Source: Macrostomum lignano
Lineage: Eukaryota
Length of the DNA: 64,000 bases
Direction: 5' to 3'
Assembly: GCA_002269645.1 (NCBI GenBank)
Contig: NIVC01000136.1
Location: 434,001 to 498,000, forward strand
Part shown: positions 4,401 through 58,832 of the stretch, one piece after another
How the letters are laid out: every line of letters begins with the position of its first letter
Position numbering within the stretch: the stretch's first letter is position 1
The notes under the pieces: model-generated
The model's database searches: none
Seen by the model: the letters and a program-made list of their open reading frames with translations, nothing else
Told to the model about the DNA's origin: nothing
Translations under genes and position numbers: made by a program

Positions 4401-7400
4401 ACAGCAGCGTCTACGAGTCGATGTGCATGAAGGACATGTGCACCTGCTTGTTGAACGGTAATGCTACAGTCTGCAACGAGCAGCGGTGCAATTCTGCCAC
4501 CCTGTACTCTAGAGCCTGCACCCAGCAGGGCATCGTCATCAACTGGAGGCAGAGCAACCTGTGCCGTAAGTCAGGCTTATTCATTATTTAAAAAAGCATC
4601 ACAAATTCATTTGAATGTGCTCCTTCAATGATTTTAGCTGCACCAAAGTGCTCCAACGGCAAGGTTTTCAGCGAGTGCAGCCACGATTGCAATCAGAAGT
4701 GCGGAACGAACACTGTGGACGACGACTGCGGAACACACTGCGTTGACGGCTGCTTCTGTCCCTCTGGTAGGTTCTGGGATGGCCATAAGTGCGTTATCCG
4801 AGACAACTGTCCTTGCAACCGCGCTGGAGACAGCCGCAGCTACCCAGTGGGTTCAAAGTACTCCCACAAGTGTGAGCAGTGCGTCTGCGACCGCGGTGGC
4901 AGCTGGAAGTGCTCGCCAACTGACGAGTGCTACGGCTACTGCACAGTGTCTGGCGACCCGACCTACAGAACATTCGACGGTCGACACTTCAGCTTCGAGG
5001 GCCACTGCGAGTACATCATGATGATGCCGCAGCGTTCAGCTGCTGAGTCTCTTGAGTACCCTGTGGCGGTTTACGTTGAGAACAAATACTGCGACAGCGT
5101 CACGGATGTTCTGTGCGCCAAGCTGGTGACACTGCAGATGGGCTCAGGGGAGAAGCAGCACACGATCAGACTGGAGAGCCTGAGCCGCGTCAAGGTAGAC
5201 TCCGCCTACGTCAGTCTGCCAGTCAAAGTTCACGACATCACCATCAGACTGGTGTCCACCAGCATGCTCCGAGTTGAGACCAACAAGGGCTTCGATCTGC
5301 TGTGGAACGGCCGCACTCGCATCCAGATCCGACTTAGCAAGGCCTTCCGCAACAAGGTGACCGGTCTTTGCGGCAACTTTAACAACGACATGAAAGATGA
5401 CACCATTTCGCCAACTGGCATTGACGTCAAGGATATTAGGCAGTTTGCTAAATCGTGGAAGACCAACCCGACGTGCGACGCGAAGACTAGGTTTGTGTAC
5501 AATGGCGCTTGCGCCACCAGCAAGGAGTTCGATTCGTATGCCACATCTGTGTGCAACAAGCTGTACACCGAGTCGGTATTCAAGGCCTGCCATTCTCGCG
5601 TCGATCCCAAGTGGGCCCTTGAGCAGTGCAAGCACGACGTCTGCAGTTGCGGATCTAGACGCAAGGGAGTCATGTCCCAGTGCGAGTGCACAGCCTTCGC
5701 CTCGTACGCCCGGTCCTGCGCTCTCGATGGCAAAGTGCTGAACTGGCGCTCCTCCAGCCTGTGTCCCGTGAAGTGCCCACCGACCATGGAGTACCAGGAG
5801 TGCGGCAGCAACTGCGGAAAGACCTGCAAGCGAGTTGAGGCGTCGCCCTGTATTGAGGAGTGCGTCGAAGGCTGCCAGTGCCCGTCTGGCCAGGCTCTGG
5901 ATGAGGAGAAGGGAACCTGCGTGCCGCGCAACCAGTGCAAGTGCGTTTACAACGGTGTTTCCTACACTAACGGCCAAGTGCGCAAGGACAAGTGCAACAA
6001 CTGTACCTGCACCGACGGCAACTGGGAGTGCACCAATCTCACATGCACTGATAGCAACACCTGTCCAGCTGGCATGGTCTGGTCCGAGTGCAGCGATTGC
6101 CAGCGCTCCTGCGAAAACATCAACATCGAATGCCCGAAATCGTCCTGCAAGAGCGGCGGCTGCGTGTGCCCCAAGGGTCAGGTTCTGCACCAGGGCAAGT
6201 GCGTTGACAAGGGCAACTGCCCGTGCGCCATGGCTGGCAAGGTGTACGCTGAGAACTCTGTGGTGCCGCGAGGCAGCACCCGGTGCTACAACTACTGCAT
6301 GTGTCGCAAAGGCAGCTGGCAGTGCACGAACAACAAGTGCCCGAGCACCTGCCGAGTCTGGGGCGATCCTCACTACGAGACCTTCGACGGTCGCTACTAC
6401 GACTTCATGGGCACCTGCAGCTACGTGCTAGCCGAGGATTACTGCGGTGGCACAGCCGGAACCTTCCGTATCACTGGCGAGAACATCAAGTGCGGCGCAG
6501 AGGGCATGTCCTGCACAAAGTCCGTGAAGATCACCTACAGGGATGTGGTTGTCCACCTGGTCCGCGGTACAGACCCAATCATCAGCCGAAACCTCTACTG
6601 GCCGGTCACCCTGCCCAAGGCCAAGTACGAGATTTACCCAGCTGGTTTCTACCTGTTCTTCCGCACGGAGGATGGCATCGAAGTCCAGTGGGACATGAAG
6701 ATGAAGGTATCCGTCACCCTGCAGCCCAACTGGATGGAGAAGGTCTGCGGTCTCTGCGGTAACTTCAACAACAAACGCGACGATGATCTGCGAGCTCGCA
6801 CTGGCGAGGTTGTCGAGGACAAGGTTGCATTCGCAGACTCGTGGAAGGTGCGCAACACCTGCCCGAAGCCGCCGCCGACGCCAATTGCACCATGCTCAAG
6901 TGAGCGCAAACGCTGGGCTGAGAAGAAGTGCGCAATTCTGCGCAGCTCTGAGTTTACGTCTTGCCACTCCAAGGTTGAAGTTAACGAGTTCTATGACAAG
7001 TGCGTCATGGATACCTGCGCCTGCAAGCTGGACGACTGTCTCTGTTACTGCACAGCCGTGTCTCAGTACGTACTGAGGTGCAACGAGATGGGCGTTAAGA
7101 TCAAATGGAGAAACCCGGATGACTGTCGTGAGTATAAATTCTCATCTTTTTAGTAGCAGAATAGCATATAATAAATGCTAATGAAATAAAAAAACATGTT
7201 TGCTCGTTCACAATTTTTAGCCGTCATGTGCCCCAAGACCATGGTCTACAAACGCTGCGGCTCTACTTGTCCCCAGCGCTGCATCGACATCTCAAAGGGT
7301 GAGACCATCACGTCCGACTGCAAGAGCACCTGCGTCGAGGGCTGCTTCTGCCCCGACGGCGAGTTCTTAGAAGACGGCGTGTGCAAGAAGCGCGAGCAGT

Positions 7401-10400
7401 GCAGCTGCGTTGTTGGCGGCAAGAAAATCGCCTACGGCAAGAAGATTATCTACAAGTGCCAGGAGTGCACCTGCACTGCCGGCTCCTTGGAGTGCAAGCC
7501 CTACTACCTGGGCGACTGCGCAACTTTCCCTACTACGGTTCCTCCAACTACTACTCGTAAGACCGAATAGTGCATCTTTAGTGTTGTAAAATTTATCAAA
7601 CTAGCAACATAATTTCCATTCTCCTGATGCAGCTTTCTGCACCGGGCCCGGCCTGATCATCTGCCGCGGTGAGCGCAAGTACTGCGCGAAGCGCTGCGAC
7701 GGCAACCGCGAGTGCATGTACGGCGACGACGAGCAGTGCTGTCACGGCAACTGCACCACTACAGAGCCAGCCACTCGACCGCCAACGACCACAACGCCGC
7801 TGACCACCACGACAACGGCTGCCTGCCCGGCGCCAAAGATTCGCGTCGACTGCGCGCCGAAGTGTCCGAAGCGGTGCCACTACCAACGCTACACCAACCC
7901 GACTGGCTGCTCGATGTCCGAGTTCGAGTGCGAGTCCGGCTGCGTCTGTCCGTCTGGCATGGTCTCCAACGGCGAGAAATGCGAGCCAGAGTCGCACTGC
8001 ATGTGCTACGACAATGTCGCCAAGGTTGTGCGAAAGGTAAGCAGAAAAGATCTTTTAATTTCGAAACTTGAACTACTGCTGAATCTGATGATTAGTAATC
8101 GCATTCGTCATACACGCAATGGCAGCGTGGGCGTCGTTTTTTAAAGCTATGGGGAAAAATTCTCAGGCGATTGAATTTCGCTGCGCTTGAATTTTTCAAG
8201 CTGAAAGAATTTCGCCAAAGTGAAATCGCCCTGTTTGGGGAAGGATCTGAGCACGGCTACGGCGATTGTGAAGTGGCAGCGAAGGAGCGCGGGAGGATCG
8301 GCGGTGGGGTGGGGGCGCCTCAGCGGCTCGTCCGCCATATGGCGTCTCTCGGAGGGGCAGCTGCGCGACGCGGAACACAATCCAGAGAAAATGTCGCTAG
8401 AGAGAGGAAAACTGAGCTCCGTTGAGAGGGGCGTTGAAATTCCAGTTGGAGCCAGACTCAACTTAGAGTGGGGACTGAGGCGCAAGAGCAAAAATGTCTT
8501 AGATTTCAGGCATCAGGGGGTCCTGTCTGACCAATGGTATTAAAAATTTCCCATTTTTTAATATTGTAAAAGTCAATAGTGTCATGCTTTGCTGGCGTGA
8601 CAGGAGGGTTGAGAAAAACTTTGTCGATCAGAAAGGAAAAGTGCGAGCATTAATAATGACACATCTACAAAGCGTCTGGAATGTAGCGTATTGTTGATTA
8701 TCTCAAAACTTCATTGCAGCCTGGAGAAAAGTGGGAGGTTGACTGCCGCGTGTGCGAGTGCTCCAACAACGATGTCAAGTGCTCGCCGAAGTGCTCAACA
8801 ACCTGCCCACCTGGCAGCAAGGCCATCTCCGTGTCGGGCAAGTGCTGCCCGGTGTGCAGCACCACCACAACTACCACGACGGTTCCAACAACGCCAACTT
8901 GCCCCGCGGGAATGGAGCGCGTTGACTGCCGATGCACAAGAACCTGCGACGATGTGCTCGCTGGCCGCAGCGCCTGCAGTCTACCCGACGGCGTCCGACC
9001 AGACTCTGAGGGCAAGTGCTGCATGGACAAGTCGAAGGTCTGTGCCGAAGGAATGGTTTTGTCATCTTCGGGAGCTTGTGTCAACGAGACTCAATGCGTC
9101 TGCAAGCCAGACAACCAGCCGATTGGTCGTGTCTTCCGCGTCAACGGCACCGACTGTGACAAGAACTGCCAGTACAAGGTGAACTGTGTACGCACCTGCA
9201 CTCCAATCTGCGAGCTGACAACTTGCGCCCCGGGTTACAGGCTTGTGCAGCCATCTGGAAGCTGCTGCCGCTGCGAGGTGAACCCGACCACACCGCCGCC
9301 AGCCTGTCTGGACAAGGACGGCGTTAAGCATTCTGAGGGCTCGACCTGGCGCTCGGGCTGTGCCATCTACACCTGCACCAAGGGCGTGATTTCCTCCAGG
9401 AAGGAGTGCAACGTTACTTGCGCCCCAGGCTTTATTCTGCGTCAGTACCCGACTAACCCAACCCGGTGCTGCGAGTGCGAGCGATTGGCAACAACGACAG
9501 TGATTGTGACACCGACCACAACCACTCTGACGAAGTGCACGCACCACGAGATCACTCTGGCCAGCGATTCTGGCTCCAAGTTCGAGATGCGCGCCAGCTC
9601 AAACAACATCGACCGGCTCAAGGCGCTGAAGGGCGCCCCCGCTAACAGCAGTTGGAGTCCAGACGCATCGGATGATGAGCCAAGGCTTGTGTTCGCTATC
9701 ACGCCGCGACCAGGCAGCCGAACCATCATCACGAAGCTGGAGCTGACAGCCACCAGAGCCCGATCAGTGGAGGTCGAGTTTACCAGCGGCAGCGACATCT
9801 GGTATTCGAAGCGAGTAGCCACGCCATCTTCCAGCGGTCTTGTCTCGCTCAGTTTCAGCAATGAAACAACTGACGGAGTCTCCGCCACGGCAGTGCGAGT
9901 CACATTCCCCCGCGGCTCAGGCGTCAAGGTGAACCCGTCCGTGTCCGGCCTGCTTATCTCTGCCTGCTTCGAAGTGAGCACAACAGTCGTCGCGCCAACA
10001 ACTACTCCGATATGCGCCAGCGGAGACAAGAAGGTCATCAGCGAGTGCATCAGCCAGGTGTGCGAGTCTGGCGCCTGGATCCGCAAGAAGTCCTGCTCCA
10101 TCGAGTGTGGCAGTAGCTGCTCAATCGTGCATTTCTCCGGAGATGCCTGCTGCAAGTGCTCCTGTGGCACCACCACGACTACTAGAGTCGTTACGACCAC
10201 CACCGCGCCGCCAACAACAACCACGCCCATGTGCGCGGCCCCGATGGAGCCGTCTGACTGCATGCGCAAGTGCCGCAAGTGCCACTACATCGAGCCGGAG
10301 TGCAGCTCGGAGGGAAAATTCCCCTGCGAAAGCGGCTGCCAGTGCCCATCTGGCTACAGAATGAACTCCACCAACCACTGCGTCAAGTCAGAAGACTGCA

Positions 10401-13400
10401 GCTGTCGATCGCCCGATGGCAAGGTCCGCTCCGCTGGAGATGTCTGGGTTGTTGACTGCATCCGATACACCTGCGCCAACAACACGATCAGCAATCTGGG
10501 CCGAGTGCCGTGCAGGAGTGTCACATGCCCGGTTAGTGTTGATACCGCTGTTGTTAAACCGTACGCTTCTAAAAACCACTATTGCATAAAATTATTTAAT
10601 CACTAACTTTAGGCCGGCTCAATGATGGTGACTGCCGATTGCTGTCCGTCATGCGTCACTAAGCCGCCCACAACGGGCCCGGAGACCACATTGCCGCCCA
10701 CGACTACAGTTGCGCCCAAGCGTGTCTGCCACTACCTGGATCCTGCGACCAACCGTACTGTGGAGAAATCAGTACGAAATAAATTATTTTGACAAATTTA
10801 TTTTAACAGTTGAGCACCCGAATTAAACTCCTTTCTTTTGACGCGATTGCAGATCAATGAGACCTGGGTTGAGACAGCCGTCGGTACGTCCTGCAAGCGT
10901 GTCTGCTCGTGCACTACGGCCGCCATGGTCGAGTGCAAGAGTGTCGCCATCAGCGCCGCTGAGAAAGCGCAATGTTTGGAAAGCTGCCAGAAGAAGTATC
11001 CGGTATGTTTCTACCCACAAGCAAATTTTCTTACTTCAATTAGTACATGTAGGTTTAGTCTAGAATTAACTGTCGCACTAAAACTTTTTAGACTGACAAG
11101 GATGTGAAGGCCAACTTCGATTCCAGCTGCCGTTGCGGCTGCACGTCAAGCTGCACAGAGTTGAAGGTGTGCGAGCTGCCTTGCAACGAGACAGTTGGCA
11201 GTTTGGACGAGCAGAACCTCTACTGTCTGTCCAAGGGCCTTTTCAAGACCGAGCCAAAGTGCACCTGCAGCGAGGCTCTGCCAGGCTACGGAAGCTCGGA
11301 AGTTAGAAGCGCCACTTTCGGAGGTGCAAAACACTGCTTCGCTCAGAAGACGTGCACAAAGAGCTGCAATTACAACGGCAAGAGAGTTCCGGTACGCATT
11401 TTTTACAGAAAGTTAGAGTATTAATGATTGATGTATTTATGACTCGCTCAAAATGTTTTCTCTAAAAACCAATGCGCAGATCCACGGTGTGGTCAAAGAG
11501 GTGGACTCCACTGGTAGCGTTATTCCATGCCGAGAGTGCACCTGCGGCGAGTCCTTCACAATGTCGTGTAACACGGTGAAGAACTGCACTGTGACCACAA
11601 CTGAGGCGCCAAAAACAACGACGGCTCCGGGCTGCTCCTGCGCCAAGCCCTACGAAGAGTCCGTCAACTCCACTGGAAAGTGCCGGGAGAAGATCTGCCA
11701 CTATCTTAAAGGCTCGTGCGTTTCTCGCGGCGAATGCAACTGCGAATGTAAGGGCGCCTATCTGTTCTTCAACGGTACAACCTGCGTTAACCAGGCCAAC
11801 TGTTATTGCAAAGACGAGAATGGCGCTTTGAGAAAGGTGTGATTTCATCATTTATCCTTTTTTCATAAGACTTTAAGACTTACTTATTTGCAACTTTTCT
11901 GCCGACTCACCCATTTAGAACGGAGAGAAATGGCAAAACCCGACCGATCCGTGCAAGACGCACATGTGCGTGGACAACCAAATCCAGACGTCTGATAGAC
12001 GGCCCGACTGTCCGAAGTTCGTTTGCCCACCAGACTCTGTGCGCCAGGTTCCCCCTGGCAAGTGCTGTGCCATCTGCACGCCGCAGAATGTGACTACAAC
12101 AACAGCAACCACTACCCCGAGGCCGACAACTACGACACCGATGCCGACGACAACAACACTACGATGCGCCGATTGCGGCATCTGCAAGATCCCTGGCTGC
12201 TTCCCTGCAGACAGTCTAGAGCTTGTCACTGCAGCAGCCGCCAGAACCTGCGACTACCAGCACTGCTGCTCCCCACCATCTTGCCCATCAAGCACAAGCG
12301 AGGTCAGGTACATCCGCTACAGAACCGTATGCGTGGCTTACAAGCTTTGTATGACGACAACAACCCCGCCGCTGCCGACCACAACTACCACAACACCGAT
12401 GCCAACGACGACTACCGCGTTTATCGAGCGTCACGGTATGGAAAATAATTATTTTGGGGTTGTATATTTGAGCTTTAAAAACCAATAAAAGTAACTTAAT
12501 TTACAATTGCAGTGTGCACTGATCCAATGACGCCGATGAGAGCCATCCAGAGCTACACTGGTACGTCTGGTATCGCATCTGAGGCTAGCCCCGGCAAGTC
12601 CGGCTGGCGGCCATCGACCAGTGGCACAATGAATGAGATGCTGACCATCAAGTTGGGCTTCGGAATTCCGTTTACTGGCTTCGAAATTAAGACATCTAAC
12701 GTGAAATTCTTCAGAGTGAAGTACAGTGACGCAACTGGCAGGGTATTCAACCCTTACACTGAGGCCAGCGTCACTAAAGTGTTCTCAGGCAGCGACTTTG
12801 CCTCAACCGGCCGATTTATCTTCCGCAAGAGTTTCGTCGAGACGGTAGTCTACGTGCGACTGGAGATCATTTCGTTTGTTATCCCTGGCGCACCGGCATC
12901 AATTAACTTCGAGCCTCTGGGATGCTACAAAGTGACAACCACAACACCTTCAACTACAACTACAACTTTGAAGCCAACAACAACAACACCGATTCCTCCA
13001 ACAACAACAACAACAACAATCGCTCCAACGACTACACCATCTTGCACTATCACCGAGGGAATGAACGCCGACCTGTACATTCCACCAACTTCCATCACAG
13101 TGAACCCACGCCTTGCCTGGGGATCAGTCAATGATATCCGACCGTCCGGTTCGGGCTGGAAGGTCCCTGTAGCAAGACCCGGAGAAGACAATCCGAGCGT
13201 TGTTGTCGACCTAACTCGTGGCGGAGTTGATGAGCCTACCTTCTTGGACACTGTACAAGTCTTTGGCAATGCTAAGTCCTTCAGCCTGCTGTACACGAAG
13301 AAGGGCTCAAGTGAGTTCAAGCCGTTTGGCTCACTGAACTGGCCAAGTCTGGTTCCAGCCAAGGTTACTCAGAATGACTGGACTCAGGTCAAGATCGTTT

Positions 13401-16400
13401 TAACTGGCCCAACAAACTCCTCTGACAGCACTTACGATGTGAAGATCTCTATCCGTGGCTGCTTTAAGTCCAAGCCATTCGTGACTACACCGGCTCCTAC
13501 CATCTGCCCACTGACTGACGGAATGAGAGAGCCGGCCTATATTGAGGATTCGGCTATCACCGCTGTTTCAAGCGGTAGCACACCAGTCCCAGTGACTGAG
13601 GTCAGAGCCGGAAAGACCGGCTGGGTGGCTCCATTGACTGGCAGTCAAGTTATCATCGACTTTACAAATGGTGGCAAGACAGCTGCGCCAAGAATCGCTA
13701 GCTTTGCCGTGCGAGGCACCGTTAAGACCTTCCGAATGATGTACCAGCTAAAGGGTAGGTCAAGCTTTGAGCCATTCCCATCGATTGTGACTCAGATCCC
13801 AGCCAACAAACATATTGTGACGAAGCCGGAGCCAGAGGTTGAGAAGCTGAAGATCATCCCAGTTGAGCCAGCCGATAAGTCTCAGACGAATTTCCGGTTC
13901 ACAATCGAGGTAATCGGATGCTTCCAACGAATCCCAGCAACAACTACAACCACAGCGGCAACAACCACAACGACACCTGTGCCAACAACAAAGCCGCCTT
14001 GTGACGAAATTATGTCAGGAAGAGAGATTTCTTCTCGTGCGATCAAGGTGCAGCCGGCGCCAAAGAACTCTATCGACTCTATTCGAGCCGATGCGGCTGG
14101 AGTGATTGTGCCAATGCCCATCGACCCGTCTCCAGCCAAGCGTCCGACTGTTGAAATTGACTTGACTGATGGTGGAAAGTATCAGTTTGCCAAGATGCAC
14201 CGCTTCAGGGTGTCCGGTAGTGTCAAGCTGTACGATCTGTATTTCCAGTACAACGGTGAGAGTAACATGACTCGCTACCCAGAGTCCAGCTCTTATCCAA
14301 GTTCTGGCAACGAGATCATCTACGTTGATCCGCACGCCAATGTTCAGAAGATTCGTATGGTTCTAAGAAACAACACGGACGCCAAGGCTGAGAACTATCA
14401 GTTCAGCATTCACGTCGTCGCTTGTCTTAACCCGGCAGTGGCCACAACTACAAGTTCGGCCATTACCAACACAGCCACTGCTTCGACAGGCAGTGTTACC
14501 AGATCGATACCACCTTTCCCTACTCGGCCGCATGTCACCACAACAGCCAGTGCTACAACAACTGCTGCTACAACCACAACAACAGCTGCAACCACAACAA
14601 CAGCTGCTACAACTACAACTACGGCTGCTACAACCACAACAACGGCAATGCCAACAACAACGACACCTAAATGTCCGATTGTTGAAGGAATGTCGAGCCC
14701 GAAATACATCCCGGATTCTTGGATTTCTGTTAGGCCCAGCAACTATTCATCAACAATCCCAGAAATTAGAAAGGGAACGTGGACAGTGCCTAAGGACCTT
14801 GACGGCCGCCTTGTGCAAATCATTGTCAACAGCACAAATGTTCCATTCGAGGTTGACAGAATTGAAGTCGGTGGAAACGTAAAGGACTTTGCTCTTGAAA
14901 TCGTGACACCCGATGCATCAAGACTTCGGCCATTCCCATTGGATGGAACGCCATTGAAGGGCTCTGCGAATGTGAGCCTAACACTGACGGCGTTTAGAGT
15001 CACTCTGCGCTCAACTTCTAATCCAGCTGACAAAGACTACGTTACTGGCTTGAAGGTATTTGCTTGCCTGAAAGAAACAACTGCCACGACCACACCGGGT
15101 AAAACTAACACAGCAACAGAATACACAGGTACTGTAACGAGATCAACGCCAAAGCTGCCATCAATTCCATCATTTACTACGACTCCAGCTAGTACAACAA
15201 CAATGGAAGTAACTAACACAGCGACAGAATACACGGGTACTGCAACAAGATCAACACCCAAACTTCCACCAATTATTCCGACTCGGCCACCCACTACTAC
15301 CGAAGCAGCTACAACAACAACAACAGCTTCTACTACAACAACTGCTACAACTCCAACTGAGAGGATTAAGGAGAAGACAACCACTGCAGCTCCAACAACT
15401 ACAACAACACCAAAAAAGACAACTACTACAACAGCTGCGACTACAACAACCGCTACTACTCCAACAGAGAGGATCAAGGAGAAGACAACTACTCCTACAA
15501 CAACAACAACAACAACAACAGCTGCAACAACAACAACAACAGCTGCGACAACAACAACAACAACCGCTACTACTCCAACGGAAAGGATCAAGGAAAAGAC
15601 GACTACTCCTACAACAACAGCTGCTACAACAACAACAACGACAGCTGCGACAACAACAACACCTGCAGTGACAACCACAGGACCTCCTTCGCTGCCTGAA
15701 TGTGACGCTGGCAAGTATGCTGACGGCATGTCGAATCCGAAATACATTCCTGACTCAAGCATCGAGGTTTATCCAGCTAACTTATCCTCAACAAAGGGTA
15801 ACGTTAGATCTAAAGGCTGGGTTGCTCCTCTTATGCAAGCTGGACGCCAGCCGGAAGTCAAAATCACATTTGTCAAACCAACGAGAATTGATTCGGTAAG
15901 ATTGGCGCTACAAGTAAACAGTTAACAAATTTACAAATGCTTAAAATTATGTTTATGCTTAAGATTATTATATTTTAATTTTAGATCGTCGTCCGTGGAG
16001 ACCTTAAGACGTACGTGCTAGAGATTCAAGAGGACGGTGCCAAGACAACAAGAGTTTATCCCGAATCTGGAAGAAAACTTATTGGAAATAAGGAAGAGCG
16101 AATGATTCCCCACCGCGTATTGACACAAGTTGTTGTAAGACCATCTGTACCTCTTGTGATCGACCAGAAGTCATACAATCTGACTGTTGCTTTGCATGGC
16201 TGTTACGTGATTGCCGAGACAACCACGACTGTAGCAACAACTACAACTACAGCAGCGCCAACGACAACAACAACACCAACTACAACTACAAGGCCAGCGA
16301 CGACTACAACTACAAGTATTACAACAACAACAAAGGCACCAACTACCACCACAACACCAACAACAACAACCAAGGCTGCTACAACAACCACGACAAAAGC

Positions 16401-19400
16401 AGCAACAACAACCACCTCAACCGCTGCACCAACAACAACCACCTCAACCGCTGCACCAACAACAACCACCTCAACCGCTGCACCAACAACAACCACCTCA
16501 ACCGCTGCACCAACAACAACCACCGCACCAACAACAACTACTCAGAAGCTAACTACAACGACCACTGCTTCGACAACAACAACAACGGCTACAACTACTA
16601 CAAATGCGACGACAACCAGTAAAAACACGGCTACCAAGTCAACTGGGACTGTCACAACAAAGAAGTTGACTTTCCCAACTATTTCAACGACTCCGTCTGT
16701 TGCCACCACAAGTAAGACACTGGATAACTTTTATAAAACTATCAATTACGAATAATGACGGAAATTCTTATATAATTTATTTATGCTATAATTTTTGCAG
16801 CTGCTGCAGAAACGTGCAATGAGGAGGGCATGACACCAGAGAATGCTCCTGTCAGCGCCATCAGCATACTGCCAGCCAACATGAGTCTGACTGATGATAA
16901 GGAGCTTATCCGACTGAACAGAACTGGAATGAAGATCATGAAGCCCACCGATGATCAGCCCAACCCAGAAATCATCGTCGACCTGATGCTCGGTCGTACA
17001 AAGGCTCCGTTCATCGAGAGAGTCTACGTTATGAATAATATCAAGACAGCCAAGATGGAGGTTCAAACACCTGGCAGCAGTGCATGGGTGCCAGCCTCTG
17101 GAAGCTCAGCACTAGTTAACTTCCGTGAAGCCCCCAACTACAAGCCTGTGCTGAAAACAGCAGTTAAACTGCGCATCACACTGCTTACAACTCTTGACTC
17201 TATTGACAAGCACTTCCTAGTAACACTGTCCATCAAGGGCTGCTTCACCAAGCCAATCATTACACCGACAAGTTCCACGGGCACGGTTACAACAGCCACA
17301 ACGTTGCCTCGTAAGTTTCTAGTTTATTATAATTACTAAAGACTTTGTGCACAACGTATCCTTATTTATTTGCAGCATGTGAGATTACCGAGGGCATGGA
17401 CGTACCAGCAACAATAACGGACTCTGCCATTGAGGGAAAGCCGGATCACCTGAGCAACCCAACTGAAGCTAGACCTTCTAAGGGTGGCTGGAGAGTGACA
17501 GTGCCGAAGGTGCCCACTGATGCCAAGCCCTACATCACAATCGATCTCACCGAGGGTGGCTACAGACAGCCGCAGTACACAGACAGAGTCTCTGTCACTG
17601 GCAACGTAATGTTTTACAGGCTTTTGATTAAGGAGAAGCCGGGCGACAACTTCACACAGTACCCACGCAGCGTAGAGCTAATCAGAGGCAACAACCCGCA
17701 GTACATCCTTCCTCGGCGAACAATCGCTGCCATCAGAATCGAGCCAGTTAAACCTATGACGTCGGATGCAACCCACTTCAAGTTCCATGTTCACGTGTAC
17801 GCTTGCTTCAAGTCGTTCTCAACTACAGCTGCGCCACCCACGACGACAACAACTAAGGCCCCGACAACAACCACGCCGACAACAACTGTAACTACAACTA
17901 CCATGCCGACAGAAAAAATCAAGGAGAAAACAACGCCGCCAACAACAGCTGCACCGGTCACCACGACAACCACAAAGGCCGCGACAACAACTACAACTTC
18001 AGCAACAACCACTACAACTCCGACAACAACCACAACAACTCCGACAACAACCACAACAACTCCGACAACAACCACAACAACTTCAGCAACAACCACAACA
18101 ACTCCGACAACAACTTCAGCAACAACCACAACAACTCCGACAACAACTTCAGCAACAACCACAACAACTCCGACAACAACTTCAGCAACAACCACAACAA
18201 CTCCGACAACAAATTCAGCAACAACCACAACAACTCCGACAACAACTTCAGCAACAACCACAACAACTCCGACAACAACAACAACAACTCCGACAACAAC
18301 AACAACAACTCCGACAACAACAACCACAACTCCGACAACAACTACAACGGCAACACCAACAGAGCGAATCAAGGAAAAGACGACAACACCATCAACAACA
18401 ACTACAACTACAACCACGACAACGACCCCGACAACCACTACAACGCCAACAACTACAACAACTCCAACAACAACAACAACTGCGGCGCCAACTACTACAA
18501 CAGCAGCTGCACCAGGTAGATACAAAGTCAATTAAGTGAATGGTTCAATATTTTATCAATTATTCTTACATGAAATTAATGTTTTAAAAAACTTTTACAT
18601 TTTCTGCTCTTTTTTCCAGAATGTGGCGTTGACGGTCTGAAGAATGAGCTCATTATTCCCAACTCGGCCATCAGTGGTGGGCCTGAGACAGTAAGCGCTG
18701 TTCGCAATGTGCGAAGCAACCTTGGTGGATGGAGGGTTGCAGTGCCATCTGCGGGACAGCCAAGACCTAACGTGACTATCGATCTAACAGCCAATGGACT
18801 GGCAAAGCCCGCGCCTCTTATTGAGCAGATTCGCGTGGTTGGCAACGTGCAGAAAGTTCTTGTCCTGATCCAGTACGCTGGCGAGAAGACCTGGGTTTCC
18901 GTTCCTGAAGGCTCTGGGCATGTTACTAATGGAAATACACCGATAAATATTTCACCGAATGCGAGACTAGCAAAGGTGCAAATTGTGCCTTTTACAGCTG
19001 ACAGCTCTACTGTGACTCACTATCGATTCCATGTGATCGTTCTGGGTTGCTTTAAGGAAGTCCTTACCACTACTGCTTCTGTACCAACTACAACCACTCC
19101 GGCAGCAACAACAACAACATCACCGACTACAACAACAACAACACCGACTACAACAACAACAACACCGACTACAACGACAGCGACGACAACAACAACAGCA
19201 ACGACAACAACAACACCGACAACTACAACAACAACACCAACTACAACAACAACTACACCAACTACGACAACACCGACAACAACTACTACCGCGTCAACAA
19301 CAACAACAGCGCCATCGACAACCAATGCCAAGTGTCCTATCGTCGATGGCATGGAGAGCCCGAAATCTATTAGCAGTGACAGCATCCAAATTAGTCCAAT

Positions 19401-22400
19401 GACTTCGAAGGTGTCCATCGACAGTTTACGACCTAAAGCTGGAGGCATAGAATTGAGCAAGATAGACGAACCGTACGTAACAGTTGATCTGACTGAAGGT
19501 GGCAAAAAGAAAGGAGAGATAGTTACTGGAATCAAGGTAACAGGAAACGTTAAAACTATGCACATCTCATTCATGAGAGTTGGCTCGACTGAGTTCGAGT
19601 ACTATCCTTCAAAGTCGAGTGAAGTGCCCGCTGACAAAGAGACTGAGCTGCCGCACTACATCACTGTGTCTAAAATCAGAGTTAAACCGAGCTCCACACT
19701 GGTTGATTCTGACAAGACCTACAAGTTAACCTTAGCTGTAAATGGATGCTTTAAGCAGGTTCCCACTGAACCTCCAACAACAACAAAGACAAAGGCAACA
19801 ACAACTACGACTACACCACTAACAACAACCACTACCGCAGCACCAACAACAACAACAACACCATCTACCACCACCACAACGCCATCAACAACAACAACAG
19901 CTGCAACAACAACAACAACAACCGCTACTACTCCAACGGAGAGAATCAAGGAAAAGACAACTACTCCTACAACAACAACAGCTGCAACAACAACAACAGC
20001 TGCAACAACAACAACAGCTGCAACAACAACAACAACAACCGCTACTACTCCAACGGAGAGAATCAAGGAAAAGACAACTACTCCTACAACAACAACAGCT
20101 GCAACAACAACAACAACAGCTGCAACAACAACAACAACAACAACAGCTGCAACAACTACAACGCCTGCAGTGACAACTACTACCACAACGCCAACAACGA
20201 CAACACCAAGAACTACTACTACAACATCAACAACAACACCATCTACCACCACAACGCCAACAACAACAACAGCAACAACAACAACGACCACTACCACAAC
20301 ACCAACAACAACAACAACTCAACGACCAACAACTACTACGACTTCGCCACCAACAACAACAACAGCATACTGCCCGTGGAATGATGGAATGAAAGATTTT
20401 ACAGCCATTCACACGGGTAGCATCAATATTTATCCTTCGTCATCATCCGTGAAGCCAGATGACGTGAGACCAACAGCGACTGGAATTGAGTTACTTAAGG
20501 CAGACTCTCCTTATATTGTTGTTGATCTAACAAATGGCGGACTCAATAAGCCTGTTGTCATTAAATCTCTCAGAGTTGTAGGTAATGTGAAGAATATTTT
20601 GGTTTCGTACGTCCCAGAAGGTTCGACAGAATACACTTACTATCCATCGAAGTCAAAGGTTATCTCGACAGAGGCTGATATTGATATACCAGGACATGTC
20701 AGCGTGAAGTATTTGCGAATCAATCCCGTGTCGACTAAGAACCCGGATGACGCAAGATACAAAATAACTGTCAGTGTTATTGGTTGCTTTAAGCAGGTTT
20801 CGACAACACCAACAACAACAACAGCTACAACAACAACAGCTAAAAAAACAACAACAACAGCTGCACCAATAACAACAACTACAACTCCATCAACTACAAC
20901 TACACCGCCAGCGTCAACTCATGCCTACTGTCCATGGAACGACGGCATGAAAGATGTCACCGCCATTCATTCGGGCAGCATTTCAATTTCTCCACCATCA
21001 TCTACAGTGAAGGTTGACGACATTCGTTCTGGCAGTGCTGGAATCGAACTGAAAAAGTCGGCGGAACCGTATATTACAATCGACTTGACAAACGAGAAGC
21101 GAAACAAGCCTGTTGTAGTTAAGACAATTAAAATCACTGGTAATGTGAAGAACGTACTCGTTTCGTACATCCCAGCAGGATCTACAGAGTACACGTTCTA
21201 CCCAGAGAAATCGAGACCGCTTCCAACTGATGAGGATATCGAGCTGCCAAAGTACGTTAGCATTAGCAGCCTCAGAATTGCCCCGGAGTCGACCAAGGAG
21301 CCAACTGATCCTACGTACAAACTGTCTATCAGCGTGGTTGGTTGTTTCAAGCAAGTCACCACTACGCCAGCAGCAACAACGACAACAACAACAGAAACAA
21401 CCACAAGAAGCACTACCACCGCATCAGCAACAACTACAACGGCACCTCCGACAACCACAGCACCATTCTGCCCATGGGCTGATGGAATGAATGACACAAC
21501 CATGGTACACACAGAGAGCATCGATATCTCTCCGCCGACATCGGGCGTTAAGGTTGACGACGTACGTACATCGGGCTCTGGTTTGGTGCTGAAGAAGACA
21601 TCCGAGCCATACGTATCGATTGACCTGACCAACAATGGTGCGAATAAGCCTGTAGTCGTGGAAAGCATTCGAGTGTCAGGAAACGTTGATAAATATTTGG
21701 TCTCTTACATGCCAGAAGGATCAACTGAGTTCACATACTATCCATCCAAGTCTACTCCAGTGTCAGCTGCAACTCCACTGAAGCTCTTGAAGTACACAAC
21801 AGTGTCAAAGCTTCGCATTCAACCCGTTTCAACAGTTAATTCAACCGATTCAGAGTACAAATTCACCGTTTCACTGATTGGATGCTTTAAGCAAGTGTCT
21901 ACAACCCCAACAACAACTACGACAACCATGAAGCCTACAACAACCACATCGGTTCCGAGCACGACTACAACACCTATGTCGACTACGACTACCGAAGCTG
22001 CCACAACTACACCGAAATATGGTAGGTTTTATAATGCTTAATTTTTTTATTACATAATTAACCGCTTTTAACGACGAGCTATCCACATGTATCTCATTTT
22101 AGCCTGCCCAAGTGGCGCCACGTACATGGAGGGAATTTCTTCCACTAAGTATGTCCCTGACAGTGCAATCATGGGCCAGCCAGACACACTCAGCCAGCCA
22201 ACCAATGTTAGATCAACGAAAGACGGATGGAAGGTTGCCAAGGCGACTGCTGATCAACCAAAGTCATATCTGCTTGTTGACTTGACGGACAACGGCAAGC
22301 GTCATCAGCCGATTGTCAGAAGTGTGAGTAATCGGTGCTTGAAATTTGAATTCAAATTGCAATAGTAGTTTTTAGAAATCGTACACGATTTATGAATGTC

Positions 22401-25400
22401 CTTTTTGAATCTTTCTTTGTCATTTTAGTTGAAAATCTTTGGCAACGTCAAGACTGCTCAACTGAAGATTAGGTATTCCAAGGACGGCGAGTTCACAGTA
22501 TATCCCGAGACTGGCTCCAAGATGATCAATGGAAACGAAGATGTTTTCATCATGCCGGCGTCCAGAATCTCAGCCATTAAGATTGTGCCCCTAGTGTCAA
22601 CCATTCCCGACGATACACACTTCAGGTTCAAATTGTACGTACATGGCTGCTTCTTTAATGAAGTTATCACGACCACTGCGACGACAACAACAACAACACC
22701 GACAACAACAACAACGCCTACTCCAACGACTACTACGACAACTTCTACAACAACAAAAGCACCTACTACCACTGCGCCAACAACAACAACAACACCAGAG
22801 GCTACAACAACCACGACAGAAACAACTACAACACCGAAGCCTACAACGACAACAGCGACAACAACAACACCAGAGCCTACAACAACAACAAAAGCAACAA
22901 CAACAACAACAGCCAGGCCGACTACAACTACAACAACAACTACTACTACAACTCAGAAACCAACAACTACTACATTGGCTCCCACTACGACAACAACACC
23001 AACTACTACCACAACTGTAGCACCAACTACAACAACAACGCCAACAACTACCACAACAACAGCACCAACTACGACAACAACACCAACTACCACAACAACA
23101 GCACCAACTACGACAACAAAACCAACAACTACCACAACTACAGCTCGAACTACGACAACGATGCCAACAACTACCACAACTCCGACAACAACTACCACAA
23201 CTCCGACAACAACTACAGCAACAACTACAACTGGAGCTCCAACTACCTGCCCGCTCGGATCGGACATGCAGGAAGTGATGGCCCGGCCCTCTGTCATTCC
23301 AGACAGCGCTATTCGAGTTCGTCCGGTGTCTGAGGCGTTTGATGCCGCCAGTGTACGACCGAACCGTGGAGGCTGGAAGGCCGTCGTGCCCGCTGCCAAC
23401 GAGAGCAAACCTGAGATCACAGTTGACCTGATGAGCAGCCCGTCAGTGACATCGGCGCCGATCGTTCAGAAGATCAGACTGGTTGGCAATGCAAAGACCG
23501 CCTATCTGATGGTGCAATATAACAAGGAGAAATCATACACCCGATTCCCTGAGTCAACAACAGCTGGTATCAACGGAAACGAGGACATCTACATCCCGTC
23601 TGCATCGAGAATCATGTCGATCAAGGTGTTGCTGAAGGAGCCAAAGGATGCTTCCCAGACACACTTCAAGGTACATCTCGAAGTATTCATGTGCGTTCCG
23701 AAGACAACAACAACTGCTGCCACGACTGCAACGGAGCGAATTAAGGAAAAGACTACAACTTCAGCGACAACAACAACAACTGCAGCGACAACAACTGCTA
23801 CTACAACAACACCAAAGCCAACAACAACTACGGCACCACCAACAACAACTACTCTTGCACCAAGTACAACAACAACTCCTACCACGACAACACCTAAGAC
23901 AACTACTACAACGGCTTCCACAACCACAACCACAGCTGAACGAACAACGACGACAACACCAGAGCCGACCACAACTACAACATCAACACCAAAAGCAACA
24001 ACAACTACATTGGCTCCCACTACGACAACAACACCAACTACCACTACTACAGCACCAACTACGACAACAACGGCAACAACTACCACAACTGCGACAACTA
24101 CCACAACTCCGACAACAACTACCACAACACCGACAACAACTACAGCAACAACTACAACTGGAGCTCCAACTACCTGCCCGCTCGGATCGGACATGCAGGA
24201 AGTGATGGCCCGGCCCTCTGTCATTCCAGACAGCGCTATTCGAGTTCGCCCGGTGTCTGAGGCGTTTGATGCCGCCAGTGTACGACCGAACCGTGGAGGC
24301 TGGAAGGCCGTCGTGCCCGCTGCCAACGAGAGCAAGCCTGAGATCACAGTTGACCTGATGAGCAGCCCGTCAGTGACATCGGCGCCGATCGTTCAGAAGA
24401 TCAGACTGGTTGGCAATGCAAAGACCGCCTATCTGATGGTGCAATATAACAAGGAGAAATCATACACCCGATTCCCTGAGTCAACAACAGCTGGTATCAA
24501 CGGAAACGAGGACATCTACATCCCGTCTGCATCGAGAATCATGTCGATCAAGGTGTTGCTGAAGGAGCCAAAGGATGCTTCTCAGACACACTTCAAGGTA
24601 CATCTCGAAGTATTCATGTGCGTTCCGAAGACAACAACAACTGCTGCCACGACTGCAACGGAGCGAATTAAGGAAAAGACTACAACTGCAGCGACAACAA
24701 CAACAACTGCAGCGACAACAACAACTGCAGCGACAACAACAACTGCTACTACTACGACACCAAAGCCAACAACAACTACGGCACCACCAACAACAACTAC
24801 TCTTGCACCAACAACAACAACAACTCCCACTCCAACGGAGCGAATCAAGGAAAAGACTACGACTGCAGCGACAACAACAACATCTGCTACTACTACAACA
24901 CCAAAGCCAACAACAACTACGGCATCACCAACAACAACTACCATTGCGCCAACTACAACAACTCCCACTCCAACTGAGCGAATCAAGGACAAGACTACAA
25001 CTGCAGCAACAACAACAACTACTGCTACTACCACAACAACAGCTGCGACGACCACAACAACCGCTGCACCGACAACAACAACAACGCCTACTACAACGAC
25101 TGCTTCAACAACCACTACTACAACTCAAAAACCAATGACAACAACAACTGCTGCGCCAACGACGACAACTGCACCAACAACCACTACCACAGCCGCAGTA
25201 ACAACCACTTCTATTATCGATTGTGACACTCTTGAAGAAGCCATCAATAACCCGAGCTACATTCCTGCGACAGCCGTTACAGTCAGTGTGGGATCGTTCT
25301 CTCAGAATAAATGGACAATTCCAGCTTCCGCTAAGTCGCCTAGTATTGAGGTCGTCATGAACCGCATGTACAGCTCTCTAAAATTGGCTCAGGTTTGTAA

Positions 25401-28400
25401 CTCACCTAGACTCTATTTTCAAAAGTAAAAGCTAAATAAAGTATTTATTATTTCTATTTTCAATATTGTACACTACTTACATTGTTCTAGGTTCGCGTGG
25501 ACTCGCCAGTCGCCGGATCAGTCGTGGCTGAGTACATATATGCCAACGAGACAGCTTGGACCCCAATCAATGAAGTTGGCAAGCCGAAGGGAACTATTTC
25601 GTCCGGACTTACATTTGAAGTTGCCCCGAGGGCTAAAATTACAAAGATCAGGTTCACAAATGTTACTTTCTCATCTGCAGCAGATGTTACTGCTACTATT
25701 AGCCTTAAGATCTGCAAAATGAATGGCGTTAATACTAATACTGCTGGAACTGCAACAGCCACAGCGAAGACGCCGTTCAAACCACCAACTGTTCCTCGTT
25801 ACACAACAACGGAAGCGCCGACAACAACAACAACAACAACAACAGCAACAACAACAACAACAACGCCAGTCCCTACTACCACAACAACACCAAAACCAAC
25901 AACAACAACAGCTCCAACAACCACTACTACAACTCCAACAACAACAACTACAGAAATACCAACGACTACGACTACTACAACAACAGCAAAACCAAAAACA
26001 ACAACCACACCAGAGACAACGACTACCACTACAACACCAGAACCAACAACAACAACCACACCAGAGCCAACAACTACCACAACAACACCAGAACCAACAA
26101 CAACAACCACACCAGAGCCAACAACTACCACAACAACACCAGAACCAACAACAACACACCAGAGCCAACGACTACACAACAACACCGCAGACAACTACCA
26201 ACTACAACTACAAGTTCCTACAACCACAACGACACCAAAAACAACAACAACTACACCAGTTCCGACAACTACAACGACGCCAACTACTACTACAACAACC
26301 ACATCAGCGCCAACAACTACTACTACAAAAGCAGCAACAACTACTACTACAGAAGCAGCAACAACTACTACTAGCCCAGCTTGCGACGAGACTTGTCTGT
26401 TGGACTTCGGCTGCGACCGAAACGCTCAAGTGCGAGCCCCTGGTGGTGCGTCCTCAGTTCAGCTGACTGACTTTAAGGGATCCATCTCAGAGCAGTTTGC
26501 GTGCATTGCAAAGACAGTCACTTGCTGTCCAGATGGCTACAGCAAGGTCGACAAATTCTGCGTCAAGGACACGGTTGGTTGCACTACAACGCCTCCAATC
26601 GATTGTAAGTCGCCACTTCCAAGCACCTGCCTAAAAGAAGTGACATGCGAAGAGATGACATCCGTGAGATTCAGTGAGCCTGTAAACTCTAACTCCAAAT
26701 GTCACAGCATTCTGTCGAACTGCGGATCATCTATCTGTCCAACTGGATATCGAAACAACATGAAGGGATATTGTGTCAAGTACCCAGGCTCAGATACATG
26801 TCTCAGAGCCTGCCAGTGCAAGTTCAGAAACGGAACCACAACTGACATCCGCATTGATGAGTGGTGTGACATGGGTGACTGCAGAGAGTGCCAGTGCCGC
26901 TGGGACTCCAAGAAGGGAGGCAAGATTTGGAGCAACTGCCGAGCCGGCGTCTGCACATCGCATCGCCCGACCACAGCGGAGCCAATCACAACAACAACTA
27001 AGATTGTTACAACTACAACCACGCCAGTGCCAACAACTACAGTCTTGGAGACAACAGTGGCTCCGACTCCGCCACCAGTGTGTGACAAGGTTGTCAGCGA
27101 TGTATCTAGCGGCTTCTTCCTGCGCTTTGACGCTTCTTCAACAGAGGAAGGCAGAACTGTAAGCAACGCAGCGCCAACCTCTACAGGCTGGCGTTCAGCC
27201 TCCAGCGATTCCAACCCGTCGTTGAGCGTTCGCTTCAGAGACACCATCCAGCTGTCGCACATTGACATCAGCCCGTACAATATCCGTTCCGTATCCATTG
27301 ACGTCAGCACCGATAATCGAGTATTTACACCTGTCAAAGATGCCTCTGGAGCCATCCGGCTGTGGAACATGAACGACAAGTTTGGCGAATATCAGCGAAT
27401 TCGGCTGGCCATGCTAAAGGCGGATCTTATCGATACGCTCGCCGTGCGCATCAACATTCAGCGCATCAGGTCAGATTTGGCCACCGGCCTCAACATCCGG
27501 GTCTACGGTTGCCCGCCCGAGTGCAAATCGCCAATGGTGCCCACCAACTGCACCTGTGTGAAGACCTGCGACAAGACCGAGTGCCCGACAGGATCTGCTT
27601 GCCTGCCAGGCTGCACCTGCCCGGAGGGAATGGTAATGAACGGTGGAAAATGCATCGCTCGAACGGAGTGCCCGTGTTACTACAACGTTCAGAGCAGAGT
27701 ACTCAAGGTTTGTAATATTCATCTTTGCATCAATATACATGTAGCTTCACTTCATATTTTCGATATTAATGTCATGATAACATAGCGGTACAACCCACCA
27801 TCCTTTGATTATTCAGATTGGTGAGAAGATCCCGAGTGCGAAGAATTGCACAGATGTTTTGTGCACAGCTAGCGGACTGGTGCGTGAAGTGAACACAGAG
27901 CGTGACGGATGCCACAATTGCAGTAAGTTTTGAGCATTGCCTCTGCAAGTTAATTTTAATTCTATATACGCAGGTAAAAACAATTGCAAATCTACTCGTC
28001 CCTCAGCCGGTGGCATGGAGTGGACACCGTGCAAAGACTGCCACAAGACCTGCAAGCACCGCAAGATGTCTGCTGCCTGTCTCGCAACCTGCAAGCCTGG
28101 CTGCGCCTGCCCGAAGGGCACCTACATGGACGAGGCCTCAGGAAAGTGCGTGCCCAGCTGCCCCTGCGAGATGGAGGGTGTAAAGTATCCAGTTGGAAAG
28201 AAATGGACTGACAAGTGCCGCTCCTGCGAGTGCACCATGGAAAAGGGCGCCGTGTGCAAGGAGTCCGGCTGCCATCTGTCAACTTGCCCATCTGGATATG
28301 TGATGAAGAACGACGACCCCGCCGATGGTAAGTGCTGCGAGTGCGTGCCGATCAAGTACTGCGAGTACAAGGGCGTGAAGCACCCTCTCGACACGGTGTG

Positions 28401-31157: not shown

Positions 31158-31833
31158 TCAAACTTCTAGTCCGGTACAAACCTCTAGTACTGGAAGTAAA
31201 AACGTCCAATCCAGTACAAGCCAATTTATGAAGTACATTTCAGACAAATTACAAGTGATGTGGGGAAATTCTGCAAAGTAATGAGTTTCATAAAAAATGA
31301 AGCTCAACTTGAGATATCGGCAAGTTACAAATGGCAAGTGAGAAGCGTTTTTTCCAAAAGCCACGTCACATGGGATGATGTCTCTACAGGACGAAGTCAC
31401 GATGGATTCTTGACAAATTAATTACAGTCGCAAGCGTGAACTCTTCACAAGTGCATTGATCAGTTATCAGCTTGATTCACCAATTTTGATGTTGCTCGAG
31501 AAGCTGCTGCTTTATAAAACAAGAGCTCACTTGAATGAAACCGATCTGATACTCGTACAGCTCGGCAAACACACCGAGATCTGAGCTTGAGAATTCGGTG
31601 CATCAAAACTTGTTGAGCTGCTACGAAGAGGCAACGTCATGTGTCATGTACAAGCAGACGGTTTTGCGACAACTTATCCGAATATCTTTGAGGCCAATTC
31701 AAGCGCTCTGCAGACAGAATTGGCTTCAAACACCTGTCCGAGTAAAGTCAAGGAGGATCTGCTCCGCATTCTTAAAACTGGAGAGGCAGAATGGTCATTC
31801 CTCAATAAGGATTTCCTTGGGAATTAGTGATAG

Positions 31834-53745: not shown

Positions 53746-58832
<5,087 letters not shown>

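Follow-up and report, generated by a model that had tools for sequence, protein, structure and literature searches.

Gel-forming mucins have been defined mostly from vertebrates, with CysD as the sole recognised insert in the glycosylated region. According to Lang et al. 2016, CysD is the precedent for globular modules placed between Pro/Thr/Ser-rich (PTS) tracts, and F5/8 type C (F5/8C or F5_F8, discoidin) domains are characteristic of lophotrochozoan mucin-like proteins; such domains are also present in mucin relatives of protostomes, hemichordates and cephalochordates and were lost from the vertebrate gel-forming mucins. Hemocytin is listed as an arthropod mucin relative, and flatworms are absent from the text of that paper (PMC4948705). 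In the flatworm Macrostomum lignano, Mlig-ap1 (KR-rich regions, C-type lectin, 17 EGF) and Mlig-ap2 (LDLa, TSP1, 46 repeats of 255/221 aa) have been described, and their knock-down abolished adhesion (PMC6410801). We analysed a stretch of 64,000 nucleotides from M. lignano (contig NIVC01000136.1, positions 434,001 to 498,000; called the window below, its first letter being position 1). It very probably holds a single intact gene, at 1149-29359 on the + strand, for a secreted, polymer-forming mucin of the gel-forming type, about 8,000 aa long and built with discoidin beads. That a mucin-type VWD protein can carry F5/8C inserts is already known (PMC4948705), and no concept is overturned here. 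What is new is that the gene is complete and has the largest and most diversified array among the relatives compared, and that its inserts form a distinct subfamily missed by domain databases and fully replace CysD. The original prediction, made from the letters of this stretch, had supposed that the architecture was undescribed. This went too far, as F5_F8 domains in lophotrochozoan mucin-like proteins are published (PMC4948705) and a nemertean and a chiton protein carry at least 13 and 7 modules, respectively. The N-terminal half of the gene itself is already deposited as the partial hypothetical protein PAA50248.1.

The array was searched for with a profile of its own. Segments that were not Thr-rich were cut from the central frames, and 18 distinct Cys-bracketed ones were aligned and turned into a hidden Markov model (HMM). 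Applied to all six frames of the window, the HMM found 19 loci (M1 to M19), all on the + strand, three of them split by an intron into two matches; nothing else scored in the window and nothing was found on the - strand. The loci begin within a few bases of the 19 starts that had been predicted. The consensus (C...GM...IP.SAI...P...R...GW...P...VDLT...V.GNVK...YP...GN...RI.P...D..Y...V.GCF) likewise returned the expected Cys bracketing and motifs (GM, IPxSAI, GW, VDLT, VxGNVK, RIxP, GCF), two columns alone being invariant across the 18 aligned modules, namely the first Cys and the one in the C-terminal G/A-C. M2 to M19 measure 132-149 aa and contain exactly two Cys apiece, with a near-neutral net charge (-1 to +6). 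When each module was scored with a model from which it had been left out, M3 to M17 reached 74-153 bits, M18 32.7, M2 18.0 and M19 17.8, compared with maxima of 3.5-9.5 for shuffled sequences (200 shuffles).

The first module, M1, is a Cys-bracketed segment of 146 aa at 9536-9973 and is treated separately below. The divergent M2 (12515-12931) also gave 17.3 bits with an HMM made of canonical F5/8C domains only. It is followed by M3 (13043-13468, 104 bits in the leave-one-out test), M4 (13505-13927, 112 bits, and 15.4 bits with the canonical HMM), M5 (14000-14431, 91 bits), M6 (14672-15076, 74 bits), M7 (15701-16206, 82.5 bits), M8 (16815-17249, 75.5 bits), M9 (17378-17812, 128 bits) and M10 (18622-19059, 114 bits). 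M11 (19333-19758) was the module modelled in three dimensions. Then come M12 (20371-20796), with 153 bits and a weak Pfam F5_F8_type_C match, M13 (20929-21354, 143 bits), M14 (21469-21894, 150 bits), M15 (22105-22656, found with the module HMM), M16 (23248-23700, 111 bits, Pfam F5_F8_type_C E 0.046), M17 (24175-24627), the divergent M18 (25222-25721) and M19 (27081-27518), which is the most canonical of all (19.4 bits with the canonical-only HMM). The central 4,859 aa contain 30% Thr. The linkers between modules are free of Cys, 14-237 aa long and 21-70% Thr (46-70% for the long ones), except for a 455-aa stretch before M19, which carries an island of 24 Cys (26394-26963) without a Pfam family match. 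The idea that a Thr-rich tract separates all modules did not hold for M3 and M4, which are only 14 residues apart.

The modules are mostly invisible to standard domain searches. In direct Pfam scans of the long open reading frames (ORFs), F5_F8_type_C gave no match at E <= 0.1, and when the modules were scanned singly, 4 of 18 matched PF00754, M19 alone exceeding the threshold (30.0 versus 28.2 bits, E 6.3e-7). The blank direct scan is not evidence against a discoidin fold, since profile- and structure-based tests were positive. With hhalign, the module alignment matched 12 Pfam-verified F5/8C domains end to end (probability 98.5%, E 2e-15, columns 1-142 against 4-150), and the terminal Cys pair of the modules aligned with the canonical Cys pair. 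In a search of PDB sequences, the module profile matched neuropilin-2 b1b2 (E 3.8e-6) and factor VIII C2, and it covered the whole of the CASPR2 discoidin domain (E 6.6e-5). On Limulus hemocytin it fell at 2447-2587, over the Pfam F5_F8_type_C domain at 2456-2581. The same profile also picked out the Pfam F5_F8 domains of proteins from amphioxus (lactadherin-like), an octocoral (factor-V-like) and bivalves (F5/8C). Conversely, when modules and 900 shuffles were scored with an HMM made solely of Pfam-verified canonical domains, 10 of the 18 modules exceeded every shuffle. The AlphaFold2 (AF2) model of M11, the one module with a high-confidence structure, was all-beta, with a predicted local distance difference test (pLDDT) of 93.5 and a predicted template-modelling score (pTM) of 0.88. 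Its best Foldseek matches were neuropilin-2 b1b2 (E 2.4e-6, TM-score 0.72), factor VIII, a Bacteroides F5/8C domain and the CASPR2 discoidin domain, while CBM32, the galactose-oxidase N-domain and APC10/DOC ranked lower (E 1e-4 to 1e-3). The modules have kept GW, VDL(T), RI.P and GC of the canonical motifs, and this pattern, with TQG replaced, points to a divergent subfamily. Conserved positions align with the core of the canonical domain, and the length-variable segments and loops differ from module to module. Judged by profile alignment and predicted structure, M2 to M19 are thus homologues of F5/8C domains and make up a divergent subfamily. For them the predicted discoidin-like nature was upheld by hhalign, by the profile search of PDB and, for M11, by AF2 with Foldseek.

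M1 behaved differently. Its leave-one-out score was 4.5 bits, against 4.3 for shuffled sequences, and it had no Pfam F5_F8 match in the single-module scan. The AF2 model reached a pLDDT of 69, and the best Foldseek matches were a CBM32-type module, IFT25 and APC10 (E >= 1.5e-3). Even this weak jelly-roll result leans towards the discoidin fold, as the alignment given to AF2 was made of the other modules. M1 is therefore a putative galactose-binding-like jelly roll at most; leave-one-out scoring, the canonical HMM, Pfam and AF2 with Foldseek all failed to place it among the discoidin domains.

Long open frames on the + strand extend from about 1.1 to 29.4 kb, Cys-rich at both ends and Thr-rich in the centre. 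Splicing and translating them bore out the earlier claim of one giant mucin of about 8,000 aa: once seven GT-AG introns had been removed in silico, 12500-27707 became a single frame of 4,859 codons without a stop. All splice junctions that we read were GT-AG and kept the frame. The whole coding span (1149-29359) amounts to about 8,000 codons in at least 25 exons; it opens with the start ATG and closes with a stop after ...ACGCRSCK. By direct reading, exon 1 (1149-1198) carries the start codon and most of a hydrophobic signal peptide (MGPGRYPAAVLLSAVLL), which was called by eye as a hydrophobic leader rather than with a predictor; it is followed by a GTAAGT donor and matches the N-terminus of PAA50248.1. 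This 3,666-aa entry ('hypothetical protein BOX15_Mlig026350g2, partial [Macrostomum lignano]') was the top match of the module-profile search. In a gapped search it was collinear with the window over 1149-15409, with 98-100% identity in most blocks, and in ungapped tblastn its exon blocks from 1289 to 15409 were collinear with 96-100% identity each, covering the protein from its Met to M6. From this mapping we took the start codon, the exon of the signal peptide and the exon structure of the N-terminal part. The gene model of PAA50248.1 occupies 10001-25569 of NIVC01003685.1 (GCA_002269645.1, older assembly) and ends about 1.3 kb before the end of that contig, just after M6, which accounts for the lack of a full-length protein entry. 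Its upstream neighbour on NIVC01003685.1 is a MIF4G-domain gene. Two UniProt entries, A0A1I8G0U9 (3,824 aa) and A0A1I8GY38 (3,377 aa), represent additional alleles or partial copies. At the 3' side of the central frame, two more introns and a last exon, defined by reading their junctions, end the gene. The last exon (29292-29359, ...LSC|PGGVTKTFKYQVIRACGCRSCK*) completes the C-terminal cystine knot; the spliced 89-aa C-terminus matched Pfam Cys_knot PF00007 (E 1.7e-11, 44.8 bits versus a cut-off of 24), which validates the 3' end inferred at 29359. One signal peptide and one cystine knot were thus found, at opposite ends of the gene.

On the N-terminal side of the array, exons at 2286-3495 (tblastn exon blocks, Pfam EGF-family matches) encode four EGF-like repeats after a Cys-rich CCSGW segment. 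This segment resembles an EMI domain by eye; the Pfam scan gave no EMI match and we do not claim one. Three VWD-C8-TIL assemblies (D1, D2 and D'D3-like) with CGLCG motifs follow at 3609-7555 and would constitute the N-terminal multimerisation region. In PAA50248.1, Pfam recognised VWD in 3 stretches (E 1.6e-100), C8 in 3 (6.8e-39) and TIL in 6 (2.2e-26). The closest relatives of the D region were vertebrate MUC5AC/MUC2-like proteins and proteins of gastropods (about 34% identity, 98-99% of the query covered), and SCO-spondins were among its relatives at lower scores. M1 lies inside a set of Cys-rich TIL/VWC-like exons with short Thr tracts (7635-12434; Pfam TIL and VWC matches, tblastn exon blocks). 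After M19, the exons at 27519-29089, whose junctions were read, encode a TIL domain (Pfam E 2.2e-8), VWC-like Cys-rich segments (sub-threshold Pfam matches only), two short Thr tracts and the first part of the cystine knot. Beyond the modules, where 25491-27782 and the spliced C-terminus were scanned with Pfam, only TIL and Cys_knot were found and no VWD. The gene thus shows the features by which Lang et al. 2016 delimit gel-forming mucins, namely three N-terminal VWD-C8-TIL units, a long PTS region and a C-terminal cystine knot; as read from the sequence, its plan is their (VWD-C8-TIL)x3 - PTS - cystine knot without a fourth VWD (PMC4948705). CysD (Mucin2_WxxW, PF13330) gave no match in any exon or ORF scanned across the gene, while the same model readily found CysD in Limulus hemocytin and a bivalve protein. 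The modules, lying between PTS tracts, occupy the position that CysD holds in vertebrate MUC2/MUC5, as had been proposed. LDLa (PF00057) and TSP1 (PF00090) had no Pfam match in any part of the gene either.

The introns and the divergence of the modules inform on the history of the array. Phase-0 introns split M7 (15896-15984), M15 (22324-22428) and M18 (25393-25490) at a common site, profile position 68, just 5' of the V.GNVK strand. Phase-1 introns (16712-16800, 17311-17375, 18516-18619 and 22022-22102) stop a few codons short of the first Cys in M8, M9, M10 and M15, respectively. Both types are absent from most modules. This pattern would fit an array that grew through the duplication of exons and lost introns afterwards. 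Pairwise identity between modules is 12-60%; synonymous sites are saturated (proportion of synonymous differences, pS, about 0.8), with a proportion of nonsynonymous differences (pN) of 0.25-0.48. Because of this saturation dN/dS could not be computed between modules, and our statement is limited to pN being much lower than pS. It indicates that the copies are old and under purifying selection. M16 and M17 are the exception: sequence comparison identified M17 as a recent tandem copy of M16, part of a duplicate of about 600 bp offset by 927 bp, with 5 nucleotide differences. Three of these lie inside the module and are all synonymous, the two modules being identical in protein. Taken with the divergence of the other modules, this argues against decaying spacers and against mis-assembly of a repeat.

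A module-profile search of 1.84 billion representative proteins, carried out without an index, gave 291 matching proteins at E <= 1e-3 and 62 at E <= 1e-10. A word-indexed homologue search with the module alignment gave zero matches, which is ascribed to the word index, as the index-free search found 291 relatives. The relatives are predicted proteins only, and their names come from automatic annotation. The 'mucin-2-like' protein XP_064639835.1 of the nemertean Lineus longissimus contains the same Pfam-invisible module at least 13 times after a CCPGW/EGF and 3x VWD N-terminus; its modules alternate with LDL-receptor class A (LDLa) domains and short Thr tracts and, unlike those of M. lignano, are near-identical recent repeats. 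The 'mucin-2-like' XP_064614628.1 of the chiton Liolophura sinensis has the module 7 times in a fragment without ends. A 'SCO-spondin' of the bivalve Potamilus, where LDLa was found as in Lineus, and VWD proteins of Dimorphilus and Octopus also have the module, again undetected by Pfam. The motif common to Lineus, Liolophura and other spiralian relatives is C...GM...IP.S.I...R...GW...VDLT...GNV...RI...C, set between Thr/Ser/Pro-rich linkers. The M. lignano array was the longest and most diversified among the relatives compared, its copies being old (pS saturated) and mutually divergent. Several metagenomic proteins carry the module too. Some relatives on metagenome contigs combine it with TIL/VWC, but with His/Pro/Asp-rich linkers (HPHDEHHPHDE...) in place of the Thr-rich tracts; going by these linkers, they may represent a metal-binding, not glycosylated, version of the bead-on-string design. 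In other M. lignano proteins ('membrane-associated protein', 'PKD domain-containing protein'), the module profile found 2-6 weaker stretches, so that further gene families of the worm may employ the module as well.

Several observations weigh against the interpretation of the locus as one mucin gene with discoidin modules. The exon model is drawn from the sequence and a partial annotation; 17 of 18 distinct modules are below the Pfam threshold; M1 scores hardly better than shuffled sequences; the input alignment for AF2 consisted exclusively of paralogous modules of the same gene; and the predicted disulfide between the module-terminal Cys follows from conservation, not from measurement on the model. 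Furthermore, TQG and GNxD are mostly replaced, (V/T)GNVK being found where TQG aligns or near it and GN in some modules only, so that the canonical ligand chemistry should not be assumed. One could argue that the modules are not homologous to F5/8C and come instead from a different branch of the galactose-binding-domain-like superfamily (CBM32, F-type lectin, APC10/DOC, MAM-like). The failure of direct Pfam scans for nearly all of them, the presence of CBM32, the galactose-oxidase N-domain and DOC in the Foldseek list and the resemblance of M1 to general superfamily members only would fit with this. We consider it extremely unlikely in view of the end-to-end hhalign match to canonical animal F5/8C domains with aligned terminal Cys, the predominance of animal F5/8C domains among the top structural and sequence matches, the position of M19 above the PF00754 threshold and the retrieval of hemocytin, lactadherin-like and factor-V-like proteins on their Pfam F5_F8 domains. 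It is also very unlikely that more than one gene lies here side by side, that the region is a pseudogene, or that the assembly has collapsed or expanded its repeats. In the older assembly a contig end does break the gene after M6, and the near-identical M16/M17 duplicate does lie in a repeat-rich tract. Against this, there are 4,859 spliced codons without a stop, canonical and phase-consistent introns, and a single signal peptide and a single cystine knot at the two ends of the gene; the modules are too divergent from one another to result from repeat mis-assembly, and even M16 and M17 are still separated by 5 nucleotides.

How such a protein might work can be proposed from better known ones. 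MUC2, MUC5B and VWF assemble by tail-to-tail dimerisation through cystine knots and head-to-head disulfide linkage of their D assemblies, and they carry O-glycosylated tracts. By inference from these proteins, the cystine knot would dimerise the M. lignano protein tail to tail, the D assemblies would join the dimers head to head through disulfides, and the Thr tracts would become dense O-glycosylated bottle-brushes. The discoidin modules would stay compact and unglycosylated, a bond between the two terminal Cys presumably closing each of them. They could serve as multivalent, low-affinity binding nodes, and their likely ligands are glycans carried by adjacent mucin chains, by the substrate or by microbes. 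By analogy, they would fill the non-covalent cross-linking or lectin role of CysD in MUC2/MUC5 and of trefoil (TFF) domains in Xenopus FIM-A.1. Xenopus FIM-A.1/C.1 are described as gel-forming mucins with lectin-type TFF domains as Cys-rich inserts between PTS tracts (PMC7177656). We regard the whole proposal, a discoidin-bead gel-forming mucin that assembles in this way and whose beads bind or cross-link, as fairly probable. Taken separately, the chances of a binding or cross-linking role for the beads, argued from analogy, appear about evenly balanced. A more specific version would see the modules as a Pfam-invisible, single-disulfide discoidin subfamily which, across spiralians (flatworm, nemertean, chiton, bivalve, annelid and cephalopod), would have taken over the inter-PTS position of CysD in vertebrate mucins and would provide lectins for O-glycans of the same or of neighbouring mucin molecules, the gel being cross-linked through multivalent protein-glycan contacts. 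This is doubtful; if it were true, each M. lignano chain would have 19 cross-linking nodes in place of CysD-type protein-protein contacts.

Two other roles have to be considered. The beads might bind nothing and be inert, protease-resistant spacers that interrupt the glycosylated tracts for the sake of chain stiffness, granule packing or hydration. This would agree with the near-neutral charge of the modules, with the loss of most canonical TQG and GNxD motifs and with the fact that it is the core positions that are conserved, the length-variable segments differing between modules. It seems unlikely, however, given 18 ancient copies whose fold has been kept intact under purifying selection while synonymous sites became saturated, and given the conservation of the module in a like context in nemertean, chiton, bivalve and annelid proteins. 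Furthermore, all characterised discoidin, CBM32 and CysD-type inserts are, to our knowledge, binding modules without exception. Alternatively, the protein might be a specialised glue (an egg or cement-gland adhesive, a footprint or a capsule matrix) rather than a component of general mucus, the discoidin array being responsible for adhesion to the substrate. Sea-urchin nectin consists of six tandem discoidin domains. Proteins with FA58C or VWD domains recur in marine temporary adhesives, for example Sfp10/11 and Sfp13 in sea-star footprints (PMC9382459), and VWD/TIL modules are also present in the adhesive proteins of M. lignano (PMC6410801). Yet the gene is neither Mlig-ap1 nor Mlig-ap2, the ones whose knock-down abolishes adhesion (PMC6410801); three VWD with a PTS region and a cystine knot correspond to the classical plan of a gel-forming mucin; and a literature search on the locus tag Mlig026350 and on M. 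lignano mucins returned no expression or functional information for the gene. We judge a specialised glue improbable.

The gene provides a complete and intact example, 27 kb long within one window, of an alternative to CysD, an old and diversified array of beads with a discoidin fold. As standard domain searches miss the modules, Pfam-based surveys must under-count such beads. The seed profile is now available to annotate the module in many marine invertebrate proteins called 'mucin-2-like', 'SCO-spondin' or 'hypothetical'. Transgenesis is feasible in M. lignano. In situ hybridisation and RNA interference have been applied in this species to Mlig-ap1/ap2 (PMC6410801), which makes the role of inserts other than CysD in the mechanics of mucus or glue directly testable. 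The recurrence of discoidin and VWD combinations in marine temporary adhesives also makes the protein relevant to bioadhesion.

The remainder of the window is rich in repeats. A 23-bp satellite (unit ACAGACAGCACAATACTGATAGA) forms three large arrays (41648-46189, 52872-53541 and 58923-61105) with 93-97% matches and up to 196 copies; the long - strand ORFs over these arrays are artefacts of the repeat. Satellite blocks flank on both sides an apparently intact LINE-type (long interspersed nuclear element) retroelement at 53896-58832 (+), in which ORF1 (372 aa, no Pfam match) abuts a 1,272-aa ORF2 with endonuclease, reverse transcriptase and RNase H domains. A Ty3/gypsy-type pol fragment with reverse transcriptase-RNase H and integrase zinc-binding and core domains lies at 37693-38985 (-). 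A 42-bp tandem array (51255-52532, 30 copies, 97% identity) has one frame with a K/R-rich repeat (...SAGLETPKKKRQR...) and may be coding or a minisatellite. A 394-aa ORF at 49123-50307 (-), without a Pfam family, begins with a hydrophobic leader and by eye consists of two similar halves; it is possibly the gene of a secreted lineage-specific protein. Other tandem arrays have units of 48 bp (1549-2183, within an early intron of the mucin gene), 25 bp (31815-32213) and 47 bp (63184-63728). A CT-rich array of 23-bp units (30158-31116), about 0.8 kb 3' of the mucin stop codon, accounts for a dip in GC skew at 30-32 kb.

Compared with known proteins, the M. lignano gene has little in common with Mlig-ap1 and Mlig-ap2 beyond the species, the giant size, the secretion and the presence of VWD and TIL modules (PMC6410801). 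These two lack a discoidin array, the combination of three VWD-C8-TIL with a cystine knot, and a Thr-rich PTS region, and identity of the gene with either was ruled out by the differing architectures. With SCO-spondin, it shares an N-terminal Cys-rich segment, 3x VWD and a C-terminal cystine knot, and vertebrate SCO-spondin carries F5/8C as well. Membership of that family was rejected, as it calls for LDLa and many TSP1 repeats, which Pfam did not detect in the gene, any more than EMI; unlike in SCO-spondin, the centre is PTS-rich. Like hemolectin/hemocytin of insects and Limulus, the gene combines VWD-C8-TIL units with F5/8C domains. Hemocytin has 2-3 canonical, clustered F5/8C domains, a 3 + 2 VWD layout, hardly any PTS or none and, in Limulus, also CysD, whereas the M. 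lignano protein has 18-19 divergent modules, each placed within PTS, and no C-terminal VWD. It was not assigned to this family, the layout with F5/8C between two groups of VWD being absent and no VWD lying 3' of the modules. With vertebrate MUC2, MUC5AC and MUC5B, the gene shares a signal peptide, three N-terminal VWD-C8-TIL, a long Thr-rich PTS region interrupted by small globular modules and, at the C-terminus, VWC/TIL followed by a cystine knot. The inserts of these mucins are CysD domains with 10 Cys and a WxxW motif, in contrast to the discoidin fold and 2 Cys of those in M. lignano. A fourth VWD after the PTS region is absent, as in MUC6/MUC19, and the N-terminal EGF repeats distinguish the gene from vertebrate gel-forming mucins. 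Finally, the gene shares with Xenopus FIM-A.1/C.1 the principle of an insert other than CysD, the two kinds of insert (TFF and discoidin) being analogous rather than homologous.

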